DNA of 64,000 nucleotides from Syncephalis fuscata S228 (taxonomy: Eukaryota > Fungi > Zoopagomycota), in contig JAHLTZ010000033.1 of NCBI GenBank assembly GCA_025786725.1, positions 1-64,000 of the forward strand, in the 5' to 3' direction. Within the stretch, counting starts at the first letter, position 1. Every line of letters starts with the position of its first letter. The notes below the pieces were generated by a model that saw only the letters and a program-made list of their open reading frames with translations, was not told the DNA's origin and did no database searches. Below, in pieces: positions 1,051 to 17,208 of the stretch. Position numbers and translations under genes: made by a program.

Positions 1051-2526
1051 GGTTTCTAGTAGTGACGAATAAACTGTATTGACCCAATGATATTTACTGA
1101 GATATTTGTTGTAGAATATGTATAGCTGAATAGATGAGTAGTTGCAATGATAATGTTGCAAATAAGCACTTAACTGTGGTATTTATATACTAGTGTCTGC
1201 AAAATAAATTTTATTCAATACACACAATAACCGGATTGCTATTGGCATCAATGGTACACTTCAAAGTGACAATACATATTGTGCTAATCTGACGTCTGCA
1301 CTGGATTTAAATTAGGCCTATAGTTGCTTGAATTAGCATGCTTTAACAAATTAGAGCCGACCAAATTGCTATGTATCTATACTGATTGGTTTTCAAAACA
1401 GGTAAATGACAGCATCATAGCGATTGAAGCATTAGTACAAGGTATAGGTTAGCCGAGGGATAAAATCAACAAAATGATCTAGAACCATTACCTGTTTTTG
1501 TTGTTGGCAATTATACCGAACCAAGGCGGCGTTTTTCACTATTATTAGTTCCGTGCAAAGGGCCCATTTTTAATGTAGCAAAAATACATTCTATTTTTGT
1601 ACTTCTGCCAATTAGATTCTGATTCAATGTACATTGCTAAGGCCCATCATTGCCTTGTCGAAATTCAGCATTACTTTGAACTGTATAGATGATTTCAAGT
1701 TTTTAATCAATACACTATCAGGCTAGCAAATCATTTAATGAATTGAATTTTGCAAGTCACAGTAAAACTAGGTTATAGAAATTACTGATTACAGCACAGT
1801 ATCTAGAAATAAACAAACTTTTATATAGCCAATGCTACACAAATTCATACGGTTGCATAGCTGTTTTATTAAAATACTGTGTAAATGCAAAACAGCTCAG
1901 TTACCATCGGTAATCAAACATTCGATAGTGCTGTATACTGCAATGGCTTATATAGAGATGGCTATCTATAAATACTATGCAACTGTATAGAGTACTTATA
2001 AAACGAGCTAATCTGCAAATAGCAGTGGCAGTAAAAAGATATTGCCTTTGCTGCATACTATTATGAAAAAACAAGTACTATGTCTAGACCATTTTGGTGG
2101 ACATATTATCTAAATTGGATTAGGCCTTGGATTATCTATGTAGCTATCCTATGATAGCTTTACCTGATTGACAAAAACAAGTATAAGCAATATGTTAATT
2201 TCATTGGTTATAACTAGAATATAGTCTACTGTATGCAATGCACCAGCAATTCTTGATTTTGGTACGGTCTAGAATTGACTTGCTATAATGCAAATGGTTT
2301 ATCACAGTAACCTGCAATATTGCCGGATGGATGGCATAAAATTAATGTGAATGGTGGTGGATACTGGATATCTAAAAATTTACTATATAAATTACCACAG
2401 CTAAGTGCTTATTTGTAACATTATCATTGCAACTACTCATCTATTCAGCTATACATATTCTACCAACAAATATCTCAGTAAAATACCATTGGGTTTAATA
2501 CAGTTTATTCGTCACTACTAGAAACC

Positions 2527-3027
2527 ATGCAACTCTTACCAACTCTTGTCGCTGCTGCCCTGCTGGTCACTGCCATCCCAGCTTCACTTGGTGAAAACAT
2601 CAAGATTGTACCTGGATCGCCGACGTATAAAAATGCCTATGTTGGTGTAAAAGACAAATCGGGTGTAAAAGTGCCATTCGTACATTCAAATGACAAATCC
2701 GACAACAATAAATGGATAAGAACGGAAAATCCTAGAAACAAAGTCTACAGCCAGATCAAGCATAAGGCTGAAAACAAATGCCTTAGCTATAATATGGAAA
2801 GCCTGTCTATGGACACATGTGATGAAAAAAGCGTATTCCAAGCATGGAAGTTTTATACAAAAGAAGGCGACAATAGTTATAAGAACCGTTACAAAATCAT
2901 TCCAAAATTCTTCGATAAAAAATACGAAAAAAATGAAGTATGCTTACAGGTGAGCGGCGAGGACATTAAAGTTGAAGAATGTGACTATAGTCTACCAGAA
3001 CAATATTTTATAGTGTATCCTCTATAA
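2527..3027 (+). CDS. Secreted ricin B-type lectin-like protein, copy B, 166 aa
   Basis: Intact ORF differing from copy A at 2 residues (EEIK/ENIK, SPMY/SPTY). Confidence 0.8.
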   Translation: MQLLPTLVAAALLVTAIPASLGENIKIVPGSPTYKNAYVGVKDKSGVKVPFVHSNDKSDNNKWIRTENPRNKVYSQIKHKAENKCLSYNMESLSMDTCDEKSVFQAWKFYTKEGDNSYKNRYKIIPKFFDKKYEKNEVCLQVSGEDIKVEECDYSLPEQYFIVYPL

Positions 3028-3715
3028 AAGTTATTTATACGTAAATAAAAACAACTTTTACTTTATTTATGTTAACCAACCAAAATGCATGAACAATATT
3101 GTTAATTAAATTCGCACCAATAAAACGATCACCTATTGACAAAGACGCAATAACTATTACTATTGCTTTATCAGTCAATAAATTACTATGTCTCTATTGA
3201 GACTATGATGTATTAGTTTATTTCTCCCTATACACTATTTTTTAGTAAACCAATTTATTAAATAAAGCACGTACTTGTATATAAAAATGGTTTTATTAAT
3301 GCATACCCATCATATTTTGTTACTATAATTTAAAATTAAACATCGTGTATTCATCAATTGACGCAACTATAGTTCTTAAATAGTAAAAAAGTAATTGATA
3401 ATATAATAATTGATTATAGTACTGCGTTGACATTATAATCTAGGTTACGCCAAATTAAAGCACGACGCCAGTAGTTATAGTAGGCGGATAGTAATGCTTT
3501 AGTATTGAGTTTATACTGTACTAAAACTATTTATTTGAACAAAGCAATACTTGCTAATTACAATGAAATGGTCGGCTGTCACAAAAAGATATCTTGTAAG
3601 TAAATGTATTTATTAAATTTAATTCTTAATTTGCATAGAATCTTATAGCTAACAGTCTGCTGGTCGATGTGCTATTAATCCATACGACTATTGCCAATGT
3701 AATATGATTCTAAAA

Positions 3716-5657
3716 TTAAGCAGAGCAATCTTGTGGCAGTTTTGTTCCAGCTACAACAGCATCGGCTGCTTTGGCATCTTCGCCGAGGCCTCGTTTAGCA
3801 AATGCACGCCAGAGTTCACAGCGATGCTTGCCTCCAGTCAATAGCTGTTCTGCTTGTATAATGGAATCGCGAGCATTAATAAAGTTTGGGCGACAAACTT
3901 GCAACTTAAGAGCATCCATAATAAGCTTTAATGCAAGCGTGTTACCCTTAGTGATATCGGCCGAATAACGATCCTCGTTGAATCCAAGTTTTGTTACAAG
4001 ATTCCAATAAAGTTCGTATAAGATAACCGCCCATACTTCACCAATTTTATGAAATTCATCCCAGCCTGGTTCCAAAAGGCGTGCATAAGTCAGCGGATTG
4101 ACTTTTATGTCGAGTGCATACGGATATGTGCGAATATTTTGGCCAATAACATATTTACCAAGCTCAACCTGCTTTGCTGGCGTGTCGGTGGCCTTCATTT
4201 CAAGCCAATAGGCAAAGAAGTCGCTCCATCCCTCGCCCATCCGGCAGATTGGCCATCAGGTAAACAATCGGCATTGCTTGGGCCGCCCGTCAATCGACTA
4301 CTGATACCATGGCCATATTCATGAGATACAATGTCATTTTCAAAATCGCCGTCACGCGATGGCTCGGTCGAAGTAAAGGCGAACATGCGCATTTGTGGCC
4401 GCTCACCGTCGGGTGGCGTCTCAAAATCTGCATTGTTTGTACCATCTCCATCAATGGCGTTTGCCTTGACCGCATCACCACCAAGACCACCTTTATTCCA
4501 ATTGTTTTCTTGGAAATTACCTGTGGCCTCGGTAAATCCATAGTGATAGAAGATGTCGTGCATGATATTGTTCATGTAGAACAAATTGGTGATTGATGCA
4601 TTCATACTATCGACGGGTGGCTTGGATGGATCATGGGGATAGTCAAACATCAGACTATTCCCACCGTCAGGGCGTTGCTTTGTTTGCCAATTACTGTCGC
4701 CATTAAGGTTCTCTTGAGCATAAACGTTATTGCCAATGGTGGTGTTGTATTTCTTTGTGCCTTGATCATGCCATCCAAACGGTGACGCTGCCTTATCGGC
4801 CGGGTCATTGACTAGTTCTCGGGGCGTGTCCAGAGGATTATTGCCACCAACTTTGACGACACGATAGGATGCACTCATGACCCAGTCAACTAACGAGAGT
4901 ATTTCTTTGCCATCGGCCGAAATGTAAACGTGAAAGTAATTGCGCGGCATGTGTACTTTAAATTCCCAGACCGATTCTAGCTTGTTGCAACTAGATTGGA
5001 TTAGAGACTGGGCGGCATAAACATCACGATCGACAAAAGAAACTCCTTTAAGTGTGTACTTTTGCTGCGCTCCTGGCGCGGTCAATTCTGCTGATGCCAC
5101 AGTAATTTGGTTGATATTTAGTGATTGTCCAATATGCGCGGCAAACGTGGCAAATGCTTCTTTAGGCCCAACAGCCTTACCGCTCTGCTGACTGCTCCAG
5201 GCATCGGCACGACGACGTAAGCTAGGACTGCTGCTTTTAAAAAACTATCACCATAGGCAACTACTTTTCCCTCTTTATTTACATGTACATCAATATCACC
5301 ATTAGCCACTTCCAGACCACTGATTACTTGTTTACAGTAGATGTGGGTAACACCGGTGCTTTCTGTGGTATAGTGATTACGTACAACGATTTCGTTGGCC
5401 TGAATTTTAAGTCGCTGCGTAATGAATTCAGCAGCAATCTTTATTGGATCCAGAGGATGGTCAGATGCGGGAGGGCGGAAATGCTGAAGTAGCGTAGATT
5501 TAAGACGAATTTCAGAACGTGTTACCGGTCTTGGACTGAACGTGGCAACATTCACGCGTGTTTTGCCAAATTTCGTAAGTGCACACACGATGGAAGAAAA
5601 ATTTAGTAAGGTTGCCACATAGAATAAACAATAAATAGCACTGTTGGATAGGCGCAT
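3716..5657 (-). CDS. Fungalysin (M36) extracellular metallopeptidase with signal peptide and FTP propeptide; two apparent 1-bp frameshifts (~5225, ~4241)
   Basis: ORFs 5118-5657, 4195-5100 and 3716-4240 join into signal + TGVTHIY propeptide + TIGNNVYAQ, ITNLFYMNNIMHD, HEYGHGIS zinc motif, GEGWSD and EFHKIGEVWA. Confidence 0.93.
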
Positions 5658-11056: not shown

Positions 11057-11269
11057 GTAATAGCTAATATACTTTTATTAACAGTTTTTGTTAATATTTA
11101 TTAGTTGCTTATGTCGTCTAACTAGTATTGCTGATATTATGTTCCACTTATTATTAACTATTAGTAGCAGACGACCATACATTACAATATTGGTACTAGT
11201 AAATACATAATGTTTATTGGCACTTGATTTAATTACAATCCAAAACAACGGCATTGATATTTATTATGT

Positions 11270-11834
11270 TGTTACGCTTCTAGTTTTAGAAATCGCAACT
11301 TAGATGACCAAGCAACACCTTATCCTGTCGCTATCCTATAACGCTAATTTCTGATGCTTATTAACGCTTACCTTAACGCTCAGAATACAATGTGTTATTT
11401 GGTTGTATTGCTTTTATAATAAAATTATTCCTTATTGGTCATTAATTACCACAGTTTAACTATAATAAACTGAATAACTTGTATGACACTAAGTAGAAAT
11501 AATATTGGACTAGAAACTTGATTATTTCTTTATTGATATTGAATAAAGCTATCATTATATAGTAAACATAACTAAATAGAACTGGAATGCCTTGTAGTAT
11601 TTCATCATTAGCGCAGCATATTAGTTCAGGTGACTGCTCATATGCTTACAACTAACAAGTAGCTACTCGTTATATTGTCGTAATAGCATTTGTTACTAGT
11701 AATCGGTACTAATATCCGATAGATATATTATTTTTGTGATCAATCACATGCGACTTTAACTGGTGACCCATCACACGATATATCACTTAGGCACACTTCC
11801 ACAAGACCCTGTCCGGAATATCAGAACAGTAACA
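11270..11834. mobile_element. Solo-LTR-like repeat, copy 1 (565 bp)
   Basis: Begins TGTTAC and ends GTAACA (TG...CA with 6-bp inverted termini). Direct repeat of 16645-17208. No adjacent PBS, PPT or gag-pol. Confidence 0.8.
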
Positions 11835-13694
11835 ACATGATGACGGGTGGTGTCGTATTAGTAGAGAATATGAGGGATGGTAGAGCGAAGTGACAATTGA
11901 GGATTAAACACTTAATATGATTGTTTACACTCCCATTTAGTAATACAGAAATGAAAAAAGTCTACTTGTTTATTAATGCTATTTAGTTTGTAGTAGTTAT
12001 AATAAACGTTCGGGCTTCGCCCCTAAATACCATTAGAACCACGCCCAATACCACAAGTAGAAATGATTGTTTGGTTATTTACCCATCACTTTATTCATCA
12101 ATGTTATGTTTATAGATAGCTGTTATTGATTGGTTGCTATCCTTTATGCTTGGCATTCTTTAAAGACAGTAAAATAGCATTGATTAATGGTTCTTTGTTG
12201 GATTAAATAGCCATTTACGTGTGAATTGTATAGACTTTATTGGTTGTTTTTAAACCGAATATCTTAGCTTGTACATCCTATAGTAATAAAGATTTAGTAA
12301 CTATAATTACAATATAATACTATGGAAATTAGAGAAATAGAATATTAATGCCAAATACTATTACTTTTGCTGTCTATTACTTTGCATTATTAATGCTTAG
12401 ATATGGATTTAACAATCATTAATTATTACTTAATACCTGGCAATGCTTAAATAAATTGTGTGCTATATTATAGATAAAATCAGAAGTATTTTATTGGTTA
12501 TTGCTATTTTAGAATATTATACCTGTATTATTAATGGCGCTAAAAGAATCTGGTAATAATCCGGTTTATTTTTATTAATATGTACTAAGCATAATTGGAT
12601 CAACACCAATAATACTATTATGGCCATGGGATGGGAGTCATATAATTGTCTCTACTATAGAATGCGACAACCATTCATTTCCTGTTTTGTAAAACAAAAA
12701 CTTGATTACAATTGCATTAATAATAATATGCTAATACAAACAGTAACATTGTTATAGCTATTAATATCATTAATGTACAACTTGAGGCTGCTAATATTGA
12801 TGGCAACTATATATAATTAATACGCACTCCTCCATTACTGATAATAATAGCTCAAATGAAACACTTATGCATAAACTATGCATTGTCCTTTTTCCTCACT
12901 CTCACCTTTTCATCCCTTCACTGTTGCCACCACCACTCCTTCCCTCGTCCACTAAGGCGGTGAAGGTAGCAAAAACGAAGTACTAGTCTTGTCGGGTCGT
13001 CAAAAATATTAGTCAAACATAATAAGTCCTTATTTTATTGTGCGCTCTTACCTAATGAAAATACATTGTCTTTGCAGGTCGTCTCATCGCATACCTAAGA
13101 ACCAACAGGTATCGTTGGTTAGAAGATAGATTATTTGATAACCACTGTTGTTGTTGATTGATAGCCGATGACATACAGTATCAGGCACAGCATAAGCGAT
13201 AGACCAGGCTTTGGCTGAGTGGAATTGTGGCCCATTTGACCATTCTGGTGTTTGAAAACATCACTGCCGTCAAGACGAATAAATAGCAATTTGCTTTTAA
13301 TTTCCCAATAGTTAATTCCTCATATTCACTCACTCACTCACTCACACTAGTCTCACTACTCACATTATTTACACTATTCACACTATTCACAGCATTTGAT
13401 TGAAATCGTGGCTCAAATTACAAGGTAAATATGGCAATGATGGTTATCTCTACTGGATACAGTGAATATCTATATTACTTTTATCGGTTGCTGAGGTTAA
13501 GTGACGCGTGTGGCTTGCCCTTTTCATATACCCGTTTATTCCGATCAATAAGCGCTCGCGCAATTCAAATGGGTGGTTGCACGCTCCGCACTTTTCTTTT
13601 TCTATACTCACCTCTTCTCCTTGCTTGTTTCGCACGATGACGTGTTCACTGCTTTTATTGCCTGTATACGGCTACCAATATCGCCGCGGTCCTC

Positions 13695-13701
13695 TATAAA
13701 A
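13695..13701 (+). promoter_or_regulatory. Candidate TATA box of the ODC-like gene
   Basis: TATAAAA followed by pyrimidine-rich sequence and ~850 nt containing only one ATG before the main start. Confidence 0.5.
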
Positions 13702-13945
13702 CGACCGCTACACACCTCACCGTTTGTTCTGCATTACCTTAACTTTACCTGATACCTTGTTTTATTCATACTTGCCTATTTCTACGGCAAACCAATCCAG
13801 CTTTCAATAACCAGTTGCAATACTTGACTCATATCGTTGATAACTCTACTTGCTCGTTGCTTCTCCTCACTCTTGTTCTTTATCCATTGGATCTACTGCT
13901 GTTACTTACTCTAGTAACATCGATACGAACAAACAAGCTGATTCC

Positions 13946-14029
13946 ATGCGTCGTTTGTCGAGTGATCGTTGTGCCGAGTCCAGCCGGCTTTTCATAAAAC
14001 CTTTTGTCGTGCATCCGACGGGACGCTAG
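13946..14029 (+). promoter_or_regulatory. AUG uORF (27 aa, MRRLSSDRCAESSRLFIKPFVVHPTGR) in weak context
   Basis: The only ATG between 13701 and 14546; context TCC-ATG-C. Confidence 0.45.
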
Positions 14030-14057
14030 ACCGACGTTGTCAGCGCCCACTAGCACC

Positions 14058-14177
14058 ACGGCCTCCGAAACCGCTAAGCAGTCCGTTGTTGTTGCGGTAG
14101 TGCCGGCTGCTATTGCTGCCTACCGGTACTTCTCTGGCCCTCCTCCCTGGCCCTGCTGCCGCTGCTTACACGCGTAA
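14058..14177 (+). promoter_or_regulatory. Non-AUG uORF with PPW motif (uCC-like): (M)ASETAKQSVVVAVVPAAIAAYRYFSGPPPWPCCRCLHA*
   Basis: Frame open 13998-14177 with no ATG. ACG at 14058 lies in ACC-ACG-G context. PPPW encoded at 14139-14150. Confidence 0.65.
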
Positions 14178-14546
14178 ACATACACGCTTGCCTACATTAA
14201 CTATCTTTTCTTTCCATTGCTTGCCTACTGACGTGGACTTGACGAAAGACCACTGCTTCACTACTGCTACTTCTTGCCTGCCGTTTTGCGCTTCGCATAC
14301 TATCGGCATAACTTGCACCTGCCCTAGCGGTCCACACACGTCTGCCTGCGTGTGTACGCTTGTTTGCGGGTACCTTTCTTCATATTCTATCTGACGGTGC
14401 TTATTGTGCGCAATCTACACCATTAATCATCGCCTACAATCTAACTATATTTCTATTACAATATCGCTGATTTTACTTTGATTGTTTTTGCAGGTATTAT
14501 TAGGATACCAGTCATTTAACCAAGAACTATTTTATTCGTTTTCAAG

Positions 14547-16259
14547 ATGCCTTTTGTTGAGGGAAGATTTTCATTGAACGCTGCTGAGGATGTTGAATCG
14601 ACCAACACATCTCATACTGCGACTGCAATTGTTGCTGCCAATGGTGGCATTGGCAAACAGTCGGTCTACATTGGCAACAATGCAGCCCAACTACCGATTA
14701 CTCCTCCTATTATGCCATTAGCCTTCGATGCGGCTACCAGTAACACTATTGATTTGTCAATGCCTATGGGCAATTTAGCTCCCCTTCCGGCCACGACGGC
14801 TTTGCTGTCAGCCCCACCACCACGTATGTCTGTTGATGATGCGTTGCGTCATCAGCTGGCCAACATCGAGTTTACTGGTGCCGAAGGTAATGCCTTTTTT
14901 ATTGCTGACGTGGCTCATTTACATAGACAGCACCAGACTTGGACAAATGAACTACCACAAGTTCATCCTTACTATGCAGTTAAATGCAATCCTTCGCCAC
15001 TAGTTATACAAACTCTAGCTTCATTGGGCGTTAACTTTGACTGTGCTTCAAAAATGGAAATCCAGTCTGTTTTAGAAGCTGGCGTGTCACCAGATCGCAT
15101 CATCTATGCCAATCCGTGCAAGCAACTGTCGCATATCCACTATGCAGTTGCTAATAATGTACGTATGATGACGTTTGATAACGCAGACGAACTTCATAAA
15201 ATGTATCGTGTTAATCGAGATATCAAAATGATTCTTCGTATTCTAGTCGATGATAGTAAGAGCTTCTGTCAATTAGGACTTAAGTTTGGCGCTCCTATGG
15301 AGTCGATTGAATCATTGTTGGCTGTAGCACGTGATCTTAATGTTCACTTGGCTGGCGTTAGTTTCCATGTAGGCAGTGGATGCTATGATGCCGAAGCCTT
15401 TGGCAGTGCTGTCCAGCGAGCCAAGACGGTCTTTGACTTGGCTCCGCTTTATGGACATAACGATATGCGTATTCTTGATGTTGGAGGCGGCTTTCCTGGC
15501 TCCAAGCTTGCCGATATTAAGTTTGAGCAAATTGCTGGTATATTACGTACCGCTCTTAGCGAATATTTCCCGATTGATTCGGGTATTCAGCTTATTGCCG
15601 AACCTGGCCGTTACTTTGTTGAAAATGCATTTACATTGGCCGTTAACGTTATTGCTCGACGTGTTATCTATGACGACAAGCCAGAAGGAGAGGATGGTGT
15701 GGTAACCGATAGTATGACCAACGATAACGGCAATAGCAAACCACCATCTTACATGTACTACATTAACGATAGCATGTACGGCTCATTCAACTGCATCATG
15801 TTCGATCATGTTATTATGAAGACACCGGGCCTATTGATGCATAAAGGCCAATTTCATGGCCGTGACCATCCACACCAACGTCCAGAGTATCTGGTCAACC
15901 GTGAGACGCCGACTTTGCCGCTTATAGGCTTCAGTGGCTCGAATGATGATAGTGTCGAACTGTCAACACCAAACGAGGCGATGTCGGTAGAAGGGGCACT
16001 TATGACCGCATCGCCAATGCCTCCCGGCTATCGCTGTAGCATTTGGGGTCACACTTTGGATTCAATTGACCGCATTAATCCACAATGCGTATTACCCGAA
16101 CTCCGTGTTGGTGACTGGCTACGCTACGACGGTATGGGTGCCTATACACTATGTGGAGCCTCTCAATTCAACGGCTTTAAGCAAAGTCGGGTCATCTACA
16201 TTGATACTACTGACACTTGCTCGCACACAGTAGCGACCGAGAGCGGCAACATTTACTAG
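14547..16259 (+). CDS. Ornithine decarboxylase homologue (PLP fold III, group IV) lacking the catalytic Cys360 equivalent
   Basis: YAVKCN, FDCAS, YANPCK, LKFGA, SFHVGSG, DVGGGFPG, AEPGRY, YGSFNC, GAYT and FNGF are present. WGPTCD reads WGHTLD. Confidence 0.93.
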   Translation: MPFVEGRFSLNAAEDVESTNTSHTATAIVAANGGIGKQSVYIGNNAAQLPITPPIMPLAFDAATSNTIDLSMPMGNLAPLPATTALLSAPPPRMSVDDALRHQLANIEFTGAEGNAFFIADVAHLHRQHQTWTNELPQVHPYYAVKCNPSPLVIQTLASLGVNFDCASKMEIQSVLEAGVSPDRIIYANPCKQLSHIHYAVANNVRMMTFDNADELHKMYRVNRDIKMILRILVDDSKSFCQLGLKFGAPMESIESLLAVARDLNVHLAGVSFHVGSGCYDAEAFGSAVQRAKTVFDLAPLYGHNDMRILDVGGGFPGSKLADIKFEQIAGILRTALSEYFPIDSGIQLIAEPGRYFVENAFTLAVNVIARRVIYDDKPEGEDGVVTDSMTNDNGNSKPPSYMYYINDSMYGSFNCIMFDHVIMKTPGLLMHKGQFHGRDHPHQRPEYLVNRETPTLPLIGFSGSNDDSVELSTPNEAMSVEGALMTASPMPPGYRCSIWGHTLDSIDRINPQCVLPELRVGDWLRYDGMGAYTLCGASQFNGFKQSRVIYIDTTDTCSHTVATESGNIY

Positions 16260-16644
16260 TACGTTTAGAACAATACTACGTTGGCTGCCTTAATTTTTGA
16301 CCAATATTTTTATGCAAATCCATACATGAATAAAGCATGTGATTATAATATTAAGTTTCTATTGTTTCTACAAACACGTTCTTTATTACTTTTATTGGAA
16401 AGAAAAGGGAAACAGCTATTGTACAACCATGTATAGTGGTCATTGAAGTTAACATGACGTTATTACCTGTGTATTCAAGTGACAATAATAACAGCAAATA
16501 GACAATAGGCATTGAATACATTACACTTATTAGATGGATTGAAGTAACATTTTATTTAGCCATCACATCATCACATTTATTGTTTGTTTGGTTGTCAAAT
16601 GAGCAACATTTACATACTTGAACTGCACATTTGTTTATTGACAT

Positions 16645-17208
16645 TGTTACGCTTCTAGTTTTAGAAATCGCAACTTAGATGACCAAGCAACACCTTTCCT
16701 GTTGCTATCCTATAACGCTAATTTCTGATGCTTATTAACGCTTACCTTAACGCTCAGAATACAATGTGTTATTTGGTTGTATTGCTTTTATAATAAAATT
16801 ATTCCTTATTGGTCATTAATTACCACAGTTTAACTATAATAAACTGAATAACTTGTATGACACTAAGTAGAAATAATATTGGACTAGAAACTTGATTATT
16901 CTTTATTGATATTGAATAAAGCTATCATTATATAGTAAACATAACTAGTAATAGAACTTGAATGCCTTGTAGTATTTCATCATTAGCGCAGCATATTAGT
17001 TCAGGGACTGCTCATATGCTTACAACTAACAAGTAGCTACTCGTTATATTGTCGTAATAGCATTTGTTACTAGTAATCGGTACTAATATCCGATAGATAT
17101 ATTATTTTTGTGATCAATCACATGCGACTTTAACTGGTGACCCATCACACGATATATCACTTAGGCACACTTCCACAAGACCCTGTCCGGAATATCAGAA
17201 CAGTAACA
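16645..17208. mobile_element. Solo-LTR-like repeat, copy 2 (564 bp)
   Basis: TGTTAC...GTAACA; differs from copy 1 at only a handful of positions by eye. Confidence 0.8.

Follow-up and report, generated by a model that had tools for sequence, protein, structure and literature searches.

The window analysed here, a stretch of 64,000 nucleotides from Syncephalis fuscata S228 (contig JAHLTZ010000033.1), carries an intronless ODC homologue preceded by a long leader with a single ATG. Within this leader we identified an upstream frame that has its putative start at a near-cognate ACG codon and encodes a peptide with a Pro-Pro-Pro-Trp motif, a second short candidate frame with a putative UUG start, and two potential hairpins (Table 1).

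Table 1. Features of the ODC homologue and its leader in the window
Feature	Coordinates	Strand	Basis and remarks
ATG-depleted 5' leader of the ODC homologue	13640..14546	+	ATG count; X1 contig coverage
Upstream ATG ORF, 27 codons, poor context	13946..14029	+	Copy b has TTG there (13946 A>T)
Stem-loop GGG-A-CGCU-A-GAC / GUC-AGCG-CCC	14020..14048	+	RNAfold -13.3 kcal/mol; ends 9 nt 5' of ACG
uCC1, ACG-initiated, 39 codons + TAA	14058..14177	+	Codon-level conservation, comparison across species
uCC2 candidate, UUG-Arg-Phe...Pro-Pro-stop	14286..14327	+	Conserved in four sequences
Hairpin-forming block	14334..14355	+	Shortly 3' of uCC2 stop; conserved
TTTTTGCAG, proposed intron acceptor, not supported	14485..14493	+	AG absent from copy b
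Main ORF, intronless ODC homologue, 570 aa	14547..16259	+	Pfam PF02784, PF00278

Organization of the leader and of the upstream frame

A candidate TATA box (TATAAAA) is located at 13695-13701, and the 852 nt from 13695 to 14546 contain one ATG, at position 13946, against an expectation of 11.4 under a first-order model (Poisson P ~1e-4); none of 2000 mononucleotide shuffles had a count this low. Both the TATAAAA position and the single ATG in about 850 nt agree exactly with the original prediction, which had been made from the letters of the window. The leaders of a second gene copy (copy b, located on contig C339), of the metagenomic contig L001 and of Thamnocephalis are about 900 nt long and ATG-free, and strong ATG depletion of the leader is seen in three species. 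The part of the leader matching the upstream ATG ORF has no ATG in any of these sequences, and comparison with them indicates that the upstream AUG at 13946 is probably a window-specific, derived change of the window copy.

The frame that is open from 13998 to a TAA at 14175-14177 has a translation ending in ...YRYFSGPPPWPCCRCLHA*; the original prediction had described the same ATG-less frame (13998-14177), with the end ...AAYRYFSGPPPWPCCRCLHA*, correctly. As was also claimed, the ACG at 14058-14060 stands in an ideal context, with A at -3 (14055) and G at +4 (14061), and is followed by 39 sense codons up to the stop. This upstream conserved coding region (uCC1) contains no in-frame AUG and has instead the conserved near-cognate ACG in good Kozak context. 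Its PPPW codons occupy 14139-14150 and are followed by the eight-codon tail PCCRCLHA. The frame is separate from the main ORF and ends 5' of the main AUG, with its stop 370 nt upstream of the ATG at 14547. The statement that the frame is missing from the list of open reading frames holds for ATG-started ORFs, but the list does include it from a TTG at 14004. The FSGPPPW-coding pattern occurs only twice in the whole genome (29 Mb), both times in ODC leaders, which is much more specific than chance would allow.

Conservation of the upstream frame within Zoopagales

An alignment of related ODC leaders, for which the original prediction had called, revealed conservation at the codon level with the ACG kept. 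Copy b, L001 and the Thamnocephalis contig L002 all carry the tail YR[YC]FSGPPPW[PL]CCRCLHA-stop 370-600 nt before the start of ODC. Over the last 20 codons of uCC1 in three species, pN/pS is 0.07-0.13 (pS 0.34-0.61, pN 0.044), and of the 13 columns that vary, 9 are third codon positions (P = 0.009). The position of the stop is kept among species with the stop codon itself varying between TAA and TGA, the CCRC motif is invariant in the three Zoopagales species, and Zoopagales retain the ACG together with its Kozak context; the N-terminal two thirds of the frame show little conservation and differ in length. The window and copy b show zero differences over 14012-14195 (184 nt). The upstream frame is under codon-level purifying selection across species.

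The coding signature starts at the ACG and is not present 5' of it. Initiation further upstream was considered in view of the conserved in-frame sequence DARPTLSA and rejected, as this hairpin-forming region lacks third-position bias; a conserved UUG 5' of the ACG was rejected as a start for its poor and variable context. Neither the degenerate pattern YR[YC]FSGPPPW nor the conserved hairpin core had matches in a metagenome collection that did not contain L001, and an Rfam scan of 13300-14650 gave zero matches. Contig L003, which carries P0002, includes no DNA upstream of the gene.

Homologous frames in other fungi and relation to known elements

PPW frames 5' of ODC were also found in Mucor, Rhizopus, Mortierella, Basidiobolus, Martensiomyces, Gigaspora, and two chytrids, and PPW is present in all fungal frames recovered (11/11). 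Seven AUG-less leaders (window, L001, Thamnocephalis, Mucor, Rhizopus, Martensiomyces, and Mortierella) have an AYC-ACG-G start, and in the eighth, that of Basidiobolus, the start is AUC in the same context; the chytrid frames are AUG-initiated. In Mucor and Rhizopus, the frame comprises exactly 22 codons when counted from the ACG. The Zoopagales frame and this 22-codon Mucorales frame have in common PPW and the context AUC-ACG-GCC-UCN-GAA-AC, the first 15 nt 3' of the ACG being near-identical. Frame lengths differ by multiples of three (39 vs 30 codons, and 22 in Mucorales), and the PPW peptide is kept with different codons across phyla. The CCxC tail, which had been thought unusual, turned out to be the Zoopagales version of an eight-residue post-PPW tail that Basidiobolus, Mortierella, and Gigaspora have as well; in other lineages the tail is equally long but without Cys, or PPW is followed by just two residues. 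The only invariant features of the family are PPW and the location upstream of ODC. In Dimargaris, the 2.2 kb upstream contain no PPW frame, and the element is therefore not universal.

According to a review, a 'Zygomycota' ODC uCC of 22 codons has been described, with ACG among its putative starts (Ivanov, Loughran and Atkins 2008, PNAS 105:10079, via PMC2811004). Like the window frame, it is located in an ODC leader, lacks an AUG, has a putative ACG in Kozak context, and contains adjacent prolines followed by Trp close to its end; Mucor further shares with the window the Thr-Ala-Ser-Glu-Thr codons from the start. The two differ in that the published element has 22 codons, PPW, and Leu-Ser-stop, whereas the window frame has 39 codons, PPPW, and the Cys-rich eight-residue tail. 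The match to the published 22-codon uCC places the window frame in an already described family, and by sequence comparison it is orthologous to the 'Zygomycota' ODC uCC. No earlier record of a PPW frame in Zoopagales was found in a literature search that covered the 2008 report through the review.

The vertebrate AZIN1 uCC resembles the window frame in its non-AUG start in good context, in having a PPW pause motif close to its C-terminal end, and in being upstream of an ODC-family ORF without a catalytic residue. It starts with AUU and ends with PPWxxPS-stop (PMC10855120), while the window frame starts with ACG and ends with PPPW plus eight residues; it thus has neither of the two features, AUU start and C-terminal PPWxxPS-stop, of the animal AZIN1/ODC subtype. 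For AZIN1, stalling dependent on PPW, polyamines, and eIF5A, together with queuing, is established (Ivanov et al. 2018, Mol Cell 70:254, via PMC8705083, PMC10855120), and in these secondary accounts AZIN1 is the only case for which uCC function is demonstrated (PMC8705083, PMC10855120). The classification of the frame as a near-cognate uCC of the ODC/AZIN1 type with PPW was borne out by the conservation of peptide, ACG, and Kozak context in Zoopagales and by the Zygomycota homologues (PMC2811004). Animal and zygomycete uCCs are of independent origin according to the same review (PMC2811004). The frame spans chytrids, Glomeromycotina, Mortierellomycotina, Mucorales, Entomophthoromycotina, Kickxellomycotina, and Zoopagales; it may go back to the common ancestor of Fungi instead of having arisen as a separate 'zygomycete invention'.

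Hairpins, a candidate second frame, and an insertion

The predicted energy of the stem-loop at 14020-14048 is within the best 4% among 42-nt windows of its own leader (RNAfold), and its variable sites are without third-position bias. An equivalent hairpin of different sequence, ending 7-13 nt 5' of the non-AUG start, is present in all eight non-AUG lineages and in none of the three AUG-initiated ones, the hairpin and its spacing window having been spotted first and tested afterwards. Such a stem-loop may keep the scanning 40S subunit on the weak codon and would then be a determinant that has so far gone unrecognised.

In the candidate second frame (uCC2), the CGTT-TTG-C context and CCC-TAG are kept in the window, copy b, L001, and Thamnocephalis (42, 42, 42, and 39 nt, respectively), and the codons for the conserved Arg and Pro differ between species. 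The frame ends with Pro-Pro-stop in copy b, L001, and Thamnocephalis, and with Leu-Pro-stop in the window copy. Termination stalling at Pro-Pro-stop or Pro-Ser-stop is exemplified by the small uORF of plant AdoMetDC and by yeast HOL1 (MLLLPS-stop) (PMC2811004, PMC10855120). The candidate uCC2 resembles these uORFs in its Pro-Pro-stop end and its position in a polyamine-pathway leader, but has a putative UUG start instead of AUG. We found no earlier description of uCC2 in the literature covered, which included the 2008 report as summarised in the review.

The block at 14334-14355 has a predicted stem of 8 bp in the window and copy b and of 6 bp in L001; its identity to L001 is 70%, compared with about 40% in the flanks, and its conservation in Thamnocephalis is poor. 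A possible third coding block at 14336-14383 shows four consecutive synonymous differences relative to L001, in a comparison of two sequences only.

The Zoopagales uCC contains a nine-codon insertion of 27 nt, about one ribosome footprint, which may shift the start from approximately two to three ribosome lengths off the stall site, as queuing would allow.

Probable transcription of the leader

Sequencing run X1, which is probably RNA, yielded a contig of depth 1246 that covers 13396-14418 as a single piece. The depth profile goes from 36 upstream through 1246 to 2300-5400, and then to 129 downstream of the gene. The X1 contigs have the alleles of copy b, not those of the window, at at least 18 leader sites; the profile suggests a transcribed, unspliced leader, though via copy-b alleles. 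A second X1 contig spans 14439-14643, is collinear with the genome, and has no joints reported. The original prediction had also proposed a leader intron ending at 14493; this candidate was discarded, as 14492 A>G in copy b turns AG into GG and X1 is collinear and jointless across the site. In Thamnocephalis, a good candidate for a leader intron (GTAAGT at L002:2486, CTGAC at 2681, AG at 2696 or 2717) holds all five leader ATGs.

The main reading frame and the two gene copies

The description of the region as an ODC leader was correct as to the downstream ORF with its two Pfam domains, but this ORF lacks the catalytic cysteine; therefore, the element precedes an 'ODC homologue' and not a demonstrably active ODC. 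In the alignment, the window ORF has WGHTLDS where WGPTCDS is expected, with the catalytic Cys changed to Leu and the adjacent Pro to His; the PLP lysine motif is retained. Polarised comparison assigned 18 derived residue changes to the window copy and 6 to copy b, those at invariant columns in the window copy being P502H, C504L, G409S, and A537G. Between the copies, pN/pS is 0.49, a value compatible with decay as well as with a new function, and divergence is 2.3% in the leader and 5.8% at synonymous sites of the coding sequence. Copy b has a 1-nt deletion in the present assembly, and a 575-bp direct repeat adjoins the end of the duplicated segment. Judging from these residue changes, the window ODC copy shows signs of relaxed constraint. 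Antizyme genes are present in the genome, and by analogy with AZIN1, the catalytically dead window copy may represent the equivalent of antizyme inhibitor in a fungus.

Proposed mechanism and alternative explanations

Our preferred explanation, with a probability of about 75%, is that the frame at 14058-14177 represents a true uCC in the long, AUG-free leader of an ODC-homologue mRNA and would work, by analogy with AZIN1, as a polyamine sensor. Most scanning 40S subunits would bypass the weak ACG and arrive at the main AUG, while the few ribosomes initiating at the ACG would translate the 39 codons. High levels of free polyamines would interfere with eIF5A, causing a pause at Pro-Pro-Pro-Trp, 29 codons past the start. 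The paused ribosome would block the leader, and later ribosomes would queue back to the ACG, leading to more initiation there and to a further decrease in translation of the main ORF. The stem-loop that precedes the ACG may re-form once the 40S subunit has passed it and keep the subunit over the weak codon, and the UUG...Pro-Pro-stop frame would supply an additional eIF5A-sensitive termination step; both are probably accessory parts of the device.

Alternatively, the frame could be translated and inhibitory without sensing polyamines: it would form a constitutive barrier or cause decay of the mRNA, with constant repression whatever the polyamine level. Nonsense-mediated decay could be elicited by a uORF whose stop lies 370 nt before the main AUG. 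The window C-terminus, PPPW plus eight residues, differs from the tested animal motif PPWxxPS-stop, and a function of fungal PPW frames is proposed by analogy. We nevertheless consider such a barrier improbable: the element is tied to ODC, whose product makes polyamines, from chytrids to Mucorales, its one invariant feature PPW is the motif most dependent on eIF5A/EF-P, and the FSGPPPW pattern is restricted genome-wide to the two ODC leaders. Conservation of an RNA structure or protein-binding site in an untranslated frame would account for the nucleotide-level conservation of the 40 nt that precede the ACG, which form a hairpin and lack third-position bias, and for the near-identity of the first 15 nt past the ACG between Zoopagales and Mucorales. 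It is very hard to reconcile with the strong preponderance of synonymous changes in the C-terminal 20 codons, with the constant position of a varying stop codon, with length differences in multiples of three, with the retention of the PPW peptide by different codons across phyla, and with the lack of an Rfam match. The least credible alternative is that the Cys-rich 39-residue peptide functions itself, for example as a metal- or redox-binding micropeptide, and not as a cis-acting nascent-chain sensor. The invariant CCRC of three Zoopagales species would fit this explanation, but the frame has no AUG and a poorly conserved, length-variable N-terminal part, and only PPW and the position at ODC persist in lineages with non-Cys or two-residue tails.

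The remaining alternative concerns the window copy rather than the family: the window unit would be a decaying duplicate or allele, its uCC a recent relic without a role, and copy b on C339 the working gene. The excess of derived changes, including those at invariant columns, the pN/pS between the copies, the gained upstream ATG, the lost Pro-Pro-stop of the second frame, the exclusive presence of copy-b alleles in the X1 contigs, and the direct repeat adjoining the duplicated segment are all in its favour. Yet the 570-codon ORF is intact, uCC1 and its hairpin are identical to copy b over 184 nt, the leader has diverged less than synonymous sites, the 1-nt deletion is in copy b, and vertebrate AZIN1 is a dead ODC paralogue with a kept uCC, antizyme being encoded in the present genome. 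We regard a relic without function as rather unlikely. Still, the switch may no longer matter for the window copy, because this copy shows signs of decay in its lost catalytic Cys, the 18 vs 6 changes, the upstream AUG at 13946, and the lost Pro-Pro-stop.

The polyamine-sensing interpretation can be extended to a joint reading, in which a PPW frame ancestral to Fungi is combined with a 40S-holding hairpin, a second frame, a queue-spacing insertion, and an AZIN-like dead copy; we offer this combination as tentative.

Distribution and implications for annotation

Zoopagales are mostly uncultured mycoparasites and predators, for which, to our knowledge, no genome existed in 2008. The present results extend the non-AUG PPW device of ODC leaders to this order. 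Across the 11 fungal lineages compared, start type, upstream hairpin, and start-to-stall distance vary together. This series yields predictions by which the ribosome-queuing model of weak start choice can be tested, a model supported so far mostly by work on mammalian AZIN1. As regards annotation, conserved AUG-less frames in long ATG-free leaders are real and are overlooked by standard gene callers. The annotated start of the Thamnocephalis ODC itself is located 84 codons too late.

The leader of the ODC homologue contains a conserved upstream coding region

The intronless ODC homologue finds its closest named relative in the ODC of Thamnocephalis sphaerospora (60-66% identity); in a protein search, two JGI metagenome proteins score slightly above the latter, and the remaining matches are all below 50%. 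The window thus derives from a fungus in or close to the Zoopagales (Zoopagomycota). The anatomy of its leader, as described in the original prediction, was confirmed. TATAAAA lies at 13695, and the sole ATG of the 852 nt from there to the main start codon (13695-14546) is at 13946, vs 11.4 ATGs expected (P about 1e-4). The ATG-less frame stays open between 13998 and its TAA (14175-14177), with the C-terminal end ...AAYRYFSGPPPWPCCRCLHA*; its proposed start, the ACG at 14058, is flanked by A at -3 and G at +4 and gives 39 sense codons.

DNA fetched around the ODC proteins closest to that of the window yielded the same frame in two further species, a related metagenome contig (L001), where it sits 446 nt 5' of the ODC ATG, and Thamnocephalis (L002), where it sits 602 nt 5' of the ATG at L002:2749. 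The ATG at 2749 was taken as the true ODC start: it lies in frame with the annotated one (L002:3001), which is probably placed 84 codons too far downstream, and its product begins MPIFND..., resembling MPFVEG... in the window. The proposed alignment of related leaders bore out conservation of both the PPW frame and the ACG. Pairwise comparison of the last 20 codons across the three species gave pS of 0.34-0.61, pN of 0.044 and pN/pS of 0.07-0.13, and 9 of the 13 variable columns are third codon positions (binomial P = 0.009). The L001 frame ends in YRYFSGPPPWLCCRCLHA-stop and the Thamnocephalis frame in YRCFSGPPPWPCCRCLHA-stop, with the place of the stop kept and its codon varying between TAA and TGA in the Zoopagales sequences. 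The flanking regions show about 40% identity and are hardly alignable, and an ATG-free stretch of about 900 nt is present in both further leaders. Such purifying selection at the peptide level on a frame that lacks AUG indicates that the upstream conserved coding region (uCC) is real.

Homology with PPW frames of other fungi

The same scan of ODC leaders detected PPW frames upstream of ODC in many other fungi (see table). An AYC-ACG-G start region is found in 7 of the 8 AUG-less leaders (window, L001, Thamnocephalis, Mucor, Rhizopus, Martensiomyces, and Mortierella), and the eighth, from Basidiobolus, has AUC within the same context. The first five uCC residues, Thr-Ala-Ser-Glu-Thr, are common to the window and Mucor. 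In the ODC-homologue leaders of animals, Pezizomycotina, Basidiomycota, and Zygomycota, uCCs are known that range from 100 codons down to 22 codons in Zygomycota, carry two adjacent prolines near the C-terminus in almost all cases, and have putative start codons including AUU, UUG, and ACG (Ivanov, Atkins and Michael, PMC2811004). The frames of Mucor and Rhizopus, counted from their ACG, are 22 codons long, like the shortest published Zygomycota uCC. Judged by the shared start region, the PPW motif and this 22-codon frame, the window element is the Zoopagales orthologue of the already described uCC and not a new kind of element, and its assignment to the near-cognate-initiated PPW elements of the ODC/AZIN1 type is upheld in essentials. 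No earlier record of a uCC in Zoopagales was found in the literature accessed via reviews.

The CCxC tail after PPW, regarded in the original prediction as unusual, turned out to be a lineage variant, since a post-PPW tail of the same length (8 residues) occurs in Zoopagales, Basidiobolus, Mortierella, and Gigaspora, with Cys at its third position in all of these lineages except Mortierella. In Dimargaris verticillata (L004, 800-3300), the 2.2 kb preceding the ODC start contain no CCN-CCN-TGG, although the final 600 nt of the leader are ATG-free; the PPW element may have been lost or replaced there.

Coordinates of features in the window, in the same genome (G000) and in ODC leaders of other fungi
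Feature	Location	Strand	Remarks
ODC homologue	14547-16259	+	570 residues; Pfam PF02784 and PF00278 matches
Hairpin	14020-14048	+	GGG-A-CGCU-A-GAC pairs with GUC-AGCG-CCC
Candidate second small frame	14286-14327	+	begins 108 nt past the uCC stop
X1 contig	12906-13235		depth 36
X1 contig	13396-14418		depth 1246
X1 contig	over CDS		depth 2300-5400
X1 contig	past stop		depth 129
Sister ODC copy (copy b; L011, L012)	G000:C339:278674-280379		96% identical to window 13064-16605
Third, divergent ODC-like gene (L013-L016)	G000:C339 ~241993-243500		35-46% identity to fungal ODCs
ODC antizyme (L020)	G000:C54:10872-11114		PF02100; score identical to L021
ODC antizyme (L021)	G000:C179:300751-300993		PF02100; score identical to L020
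Mucor PPW frame	L005		ACG; ...GFPPWLS-stop
Rhizopus PPW frame	L008		ACG; ...GFPPWLS-stop
Mortierella PPW frame	L009		ACG; ...SPPWLPGTLGLV-stop
Basidiobolus PPW frame	L007		AUC; ...EPPPWLPCSLGLA-stop
Martensiomyces PPW frame	L006		ACG; ...APPWASSAFHPPF-stop
Gigaspora PPW uORF	L019:2899-2970		AUG-initiated, upstream of ODC
Batrachochytrium PPW uORF	L017:2813-2902		AUG-initiated, upstream of ODC
Spizellomyces PPW uORF	L018:2844-2885		AUG-initiated, upstream of ODC

A hairpin directly upstream of the near-cognate starts

Directly 5' of every near-cognate start lies a hairpin that ends 7-13 nt before the start codon. Its stem is perfect in Thamnocephalis (GGACGCU/AGCGUCC), and in the window a U-to-C change in the 3' arm is compensated by an additional G in the 5' arm; the other stems are CGGACUG/CAGUCCG in Mucorales, ACUUUUCC/GGAGAAGU in Martensiomyces and Basidiobolus, and GCAGACC/GGUUUGC in Mortierella. 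When the 42 nt before the start were ranked against the 42-nt windows of the same leader, they came out in the top 0-12% for stability in each of the eight non-AUG leaders and were unremarkable (34-65%) in the three AUG-initiated ones (Gigaspora, Batrachochytrium, and Spizellomyces), and uninterrupted stems of 7-10 bp occurred at 0-4% of background positions; these statistics are indicative only, because the test windows were chosen after the pattern had been seen. Variable sites in the hairpin region show no third-position bias, so that what looks like peptide conservation ahead of the ACG is explained by constraint at the RNA level; this also speaks for the ACG as the start. The hairpin could plausibly act as a device holding the 40S subunit: it would refold at the 40S exit side just when the P site gets to the ACG, limiting backward movement and keeping the subunit longer on the weak codon. 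The hairpin may prove a general determinant of weak start-site use.

A candidate second small frame

The second frame consists of a UUG in conserved CGUU-UUG-C, Arg-Phe, a variable middle, and Pro-Pro-stop, and is 42 nt long in the window, copy b, and L001 and 39 nt in Thamnocephalis. Its conserved Arg and Pro are encoded by differing codons between species, and in the window copy Pro-Pro-stop is changed to Leu-Pro-stop. Pro-Pro-stop is an eIF5A-dependent termination context (cf. PMC2811004). We lean towards a real translated element. In the window and L001, the frame is followed by a conserved hairpin-forming block (14334-14355). In a third frame, at 14336-14383, the window and L001 share the peptide Arg-Leu-Phe-Ala-Gly-Thr-Phe-Leu despite four successive synonymous differences, which may mark an additional coding block that overlaps the hairpin-forming one, as far as two sequences can suggest. 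Three additions of the present analysis merit testing, though the sequences behind them are few: the association of the hairpin with near-cognate starts, the Pro-Pro-stop second frame, and the spread of PPW frames across fungi, from chytrids as far as Zoopagales.

Transcript evidence and the proposed leader intron

The sequencing run X1 was labelled 'RNA?' by the read-mapping tool, and steps of at least 35-fold in contig depth within about 150 nt suggest that it is RNA rather than genomic DNA. If so, a single abundant unspliced leader carries the hairpin, the two small frames, and the block downstream of them. All 19 listed X1 leader variants match sites at which the window and copy b differ, and X1 therefore documents the sister copy and not the window copy. 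The X1 contig across the PPW segment would then make this segment exonic in copy b. The leader intron postulated to end at TTTTTGCAG (14485-14493) found no support: its AG is GG in copy b (14492 A>G), and an X1 contig is collinear with the genome over 14439-14643, with no joints reported; a minor spliced form is conceivable. The main transcription start is left undefined by X1, since the contig at 13396-14418 begins 300 nt upstream of TATAAAA and would contain five AUGs. Thamnocephalis has a good candidate for a leader intron (GTAAGT at L002:2486, CTGAC at 2681, AG at 2696 or 2717) that sits 3' of all conserved blocks and holds all five ATGs of that leader.

Proposed polyamine-dependent mechanism

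In the AZIN1 leader, ribosomes translating the uCC stall at PPW in a polyamine- and eIF5A-dependent manner; scanning ribosomes queue behind the paused one as far as the start codon, which boosts uCC initiation, and ribosomes translating the uCC do not reinitiate, so that the main ORF is repressed (PMC8705083, PMC10855120). The window element carries every sequence feature required by such a mechanism, namely a weak start codon whose context is good, the PPW motif, and a long leader free of AUG, and it is tied to ODC, the gene for putrescine production. Given that the element is real, stalling and queuing of the AZIN1 type would be the most likely mechanism by homology (probability about 0.6-0.7). 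The last Pro codon is 87 nt from the start in the window and L001, which differ from Thamnocephalis by an insertion of 9 codons; the distance is 60 nt in Thamnocephalis, Martensiomyces, and Basidiobolus, 54 nt in Mucor and Rhizopus, and 51 nt in Mortierella. These values approximate three or two ribosome footprints, which fits queuing and is no proof of it.

Divergence of the two ODC copies

The uCC peptide of copy b is that of the window, with no nucleotide differences across 14012-14195. The proteins have diverged (pN/pS 0.49): residues ~500-506 are WGHTLDS in the window and WGPTCDS in copy b and all ten compared ODCs, i.e. the catalytic Cys is replaced by Leu and the preceding Pro by His. 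Polarised with three Zoopagales outgroups, 18 changes are derived in the window copy (four at invariant columns) vs 6 in copy b, and the window copy also gained the uATG at 13946. The window copy may be a decaying allele or duplicate, or else an antizyme-inhibitor-like pseudoenzyme with a retained uCC, as in vertebrate AZIN1. Copy b keeps the catalytic Cys and has, in this assembly, a 1-nt deletion at the equivalent of window 15410, where X1 lists none. Because the antizyme is likewise present twice, on two contigs, many loci may be represented in the assembly by two haplotypes or homeologues.

The third ODC-like gene is split by several intron-like interruptions, contains a large insertion, and retains the PLP-lysine motif AVKCNPD and the catalytic-cysteine motif WGPTCDS; no PPW-coding motif turned up in the DNA fetched for it, which extends about 1.5 kb upstream of the match. 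Homology between the window and copy b ends at 16605, shortly before the second of two LTR-like 575 bp direct repeats (11260-11834 and 16634-17208; 98.3% identical) that bracket the ODC region.
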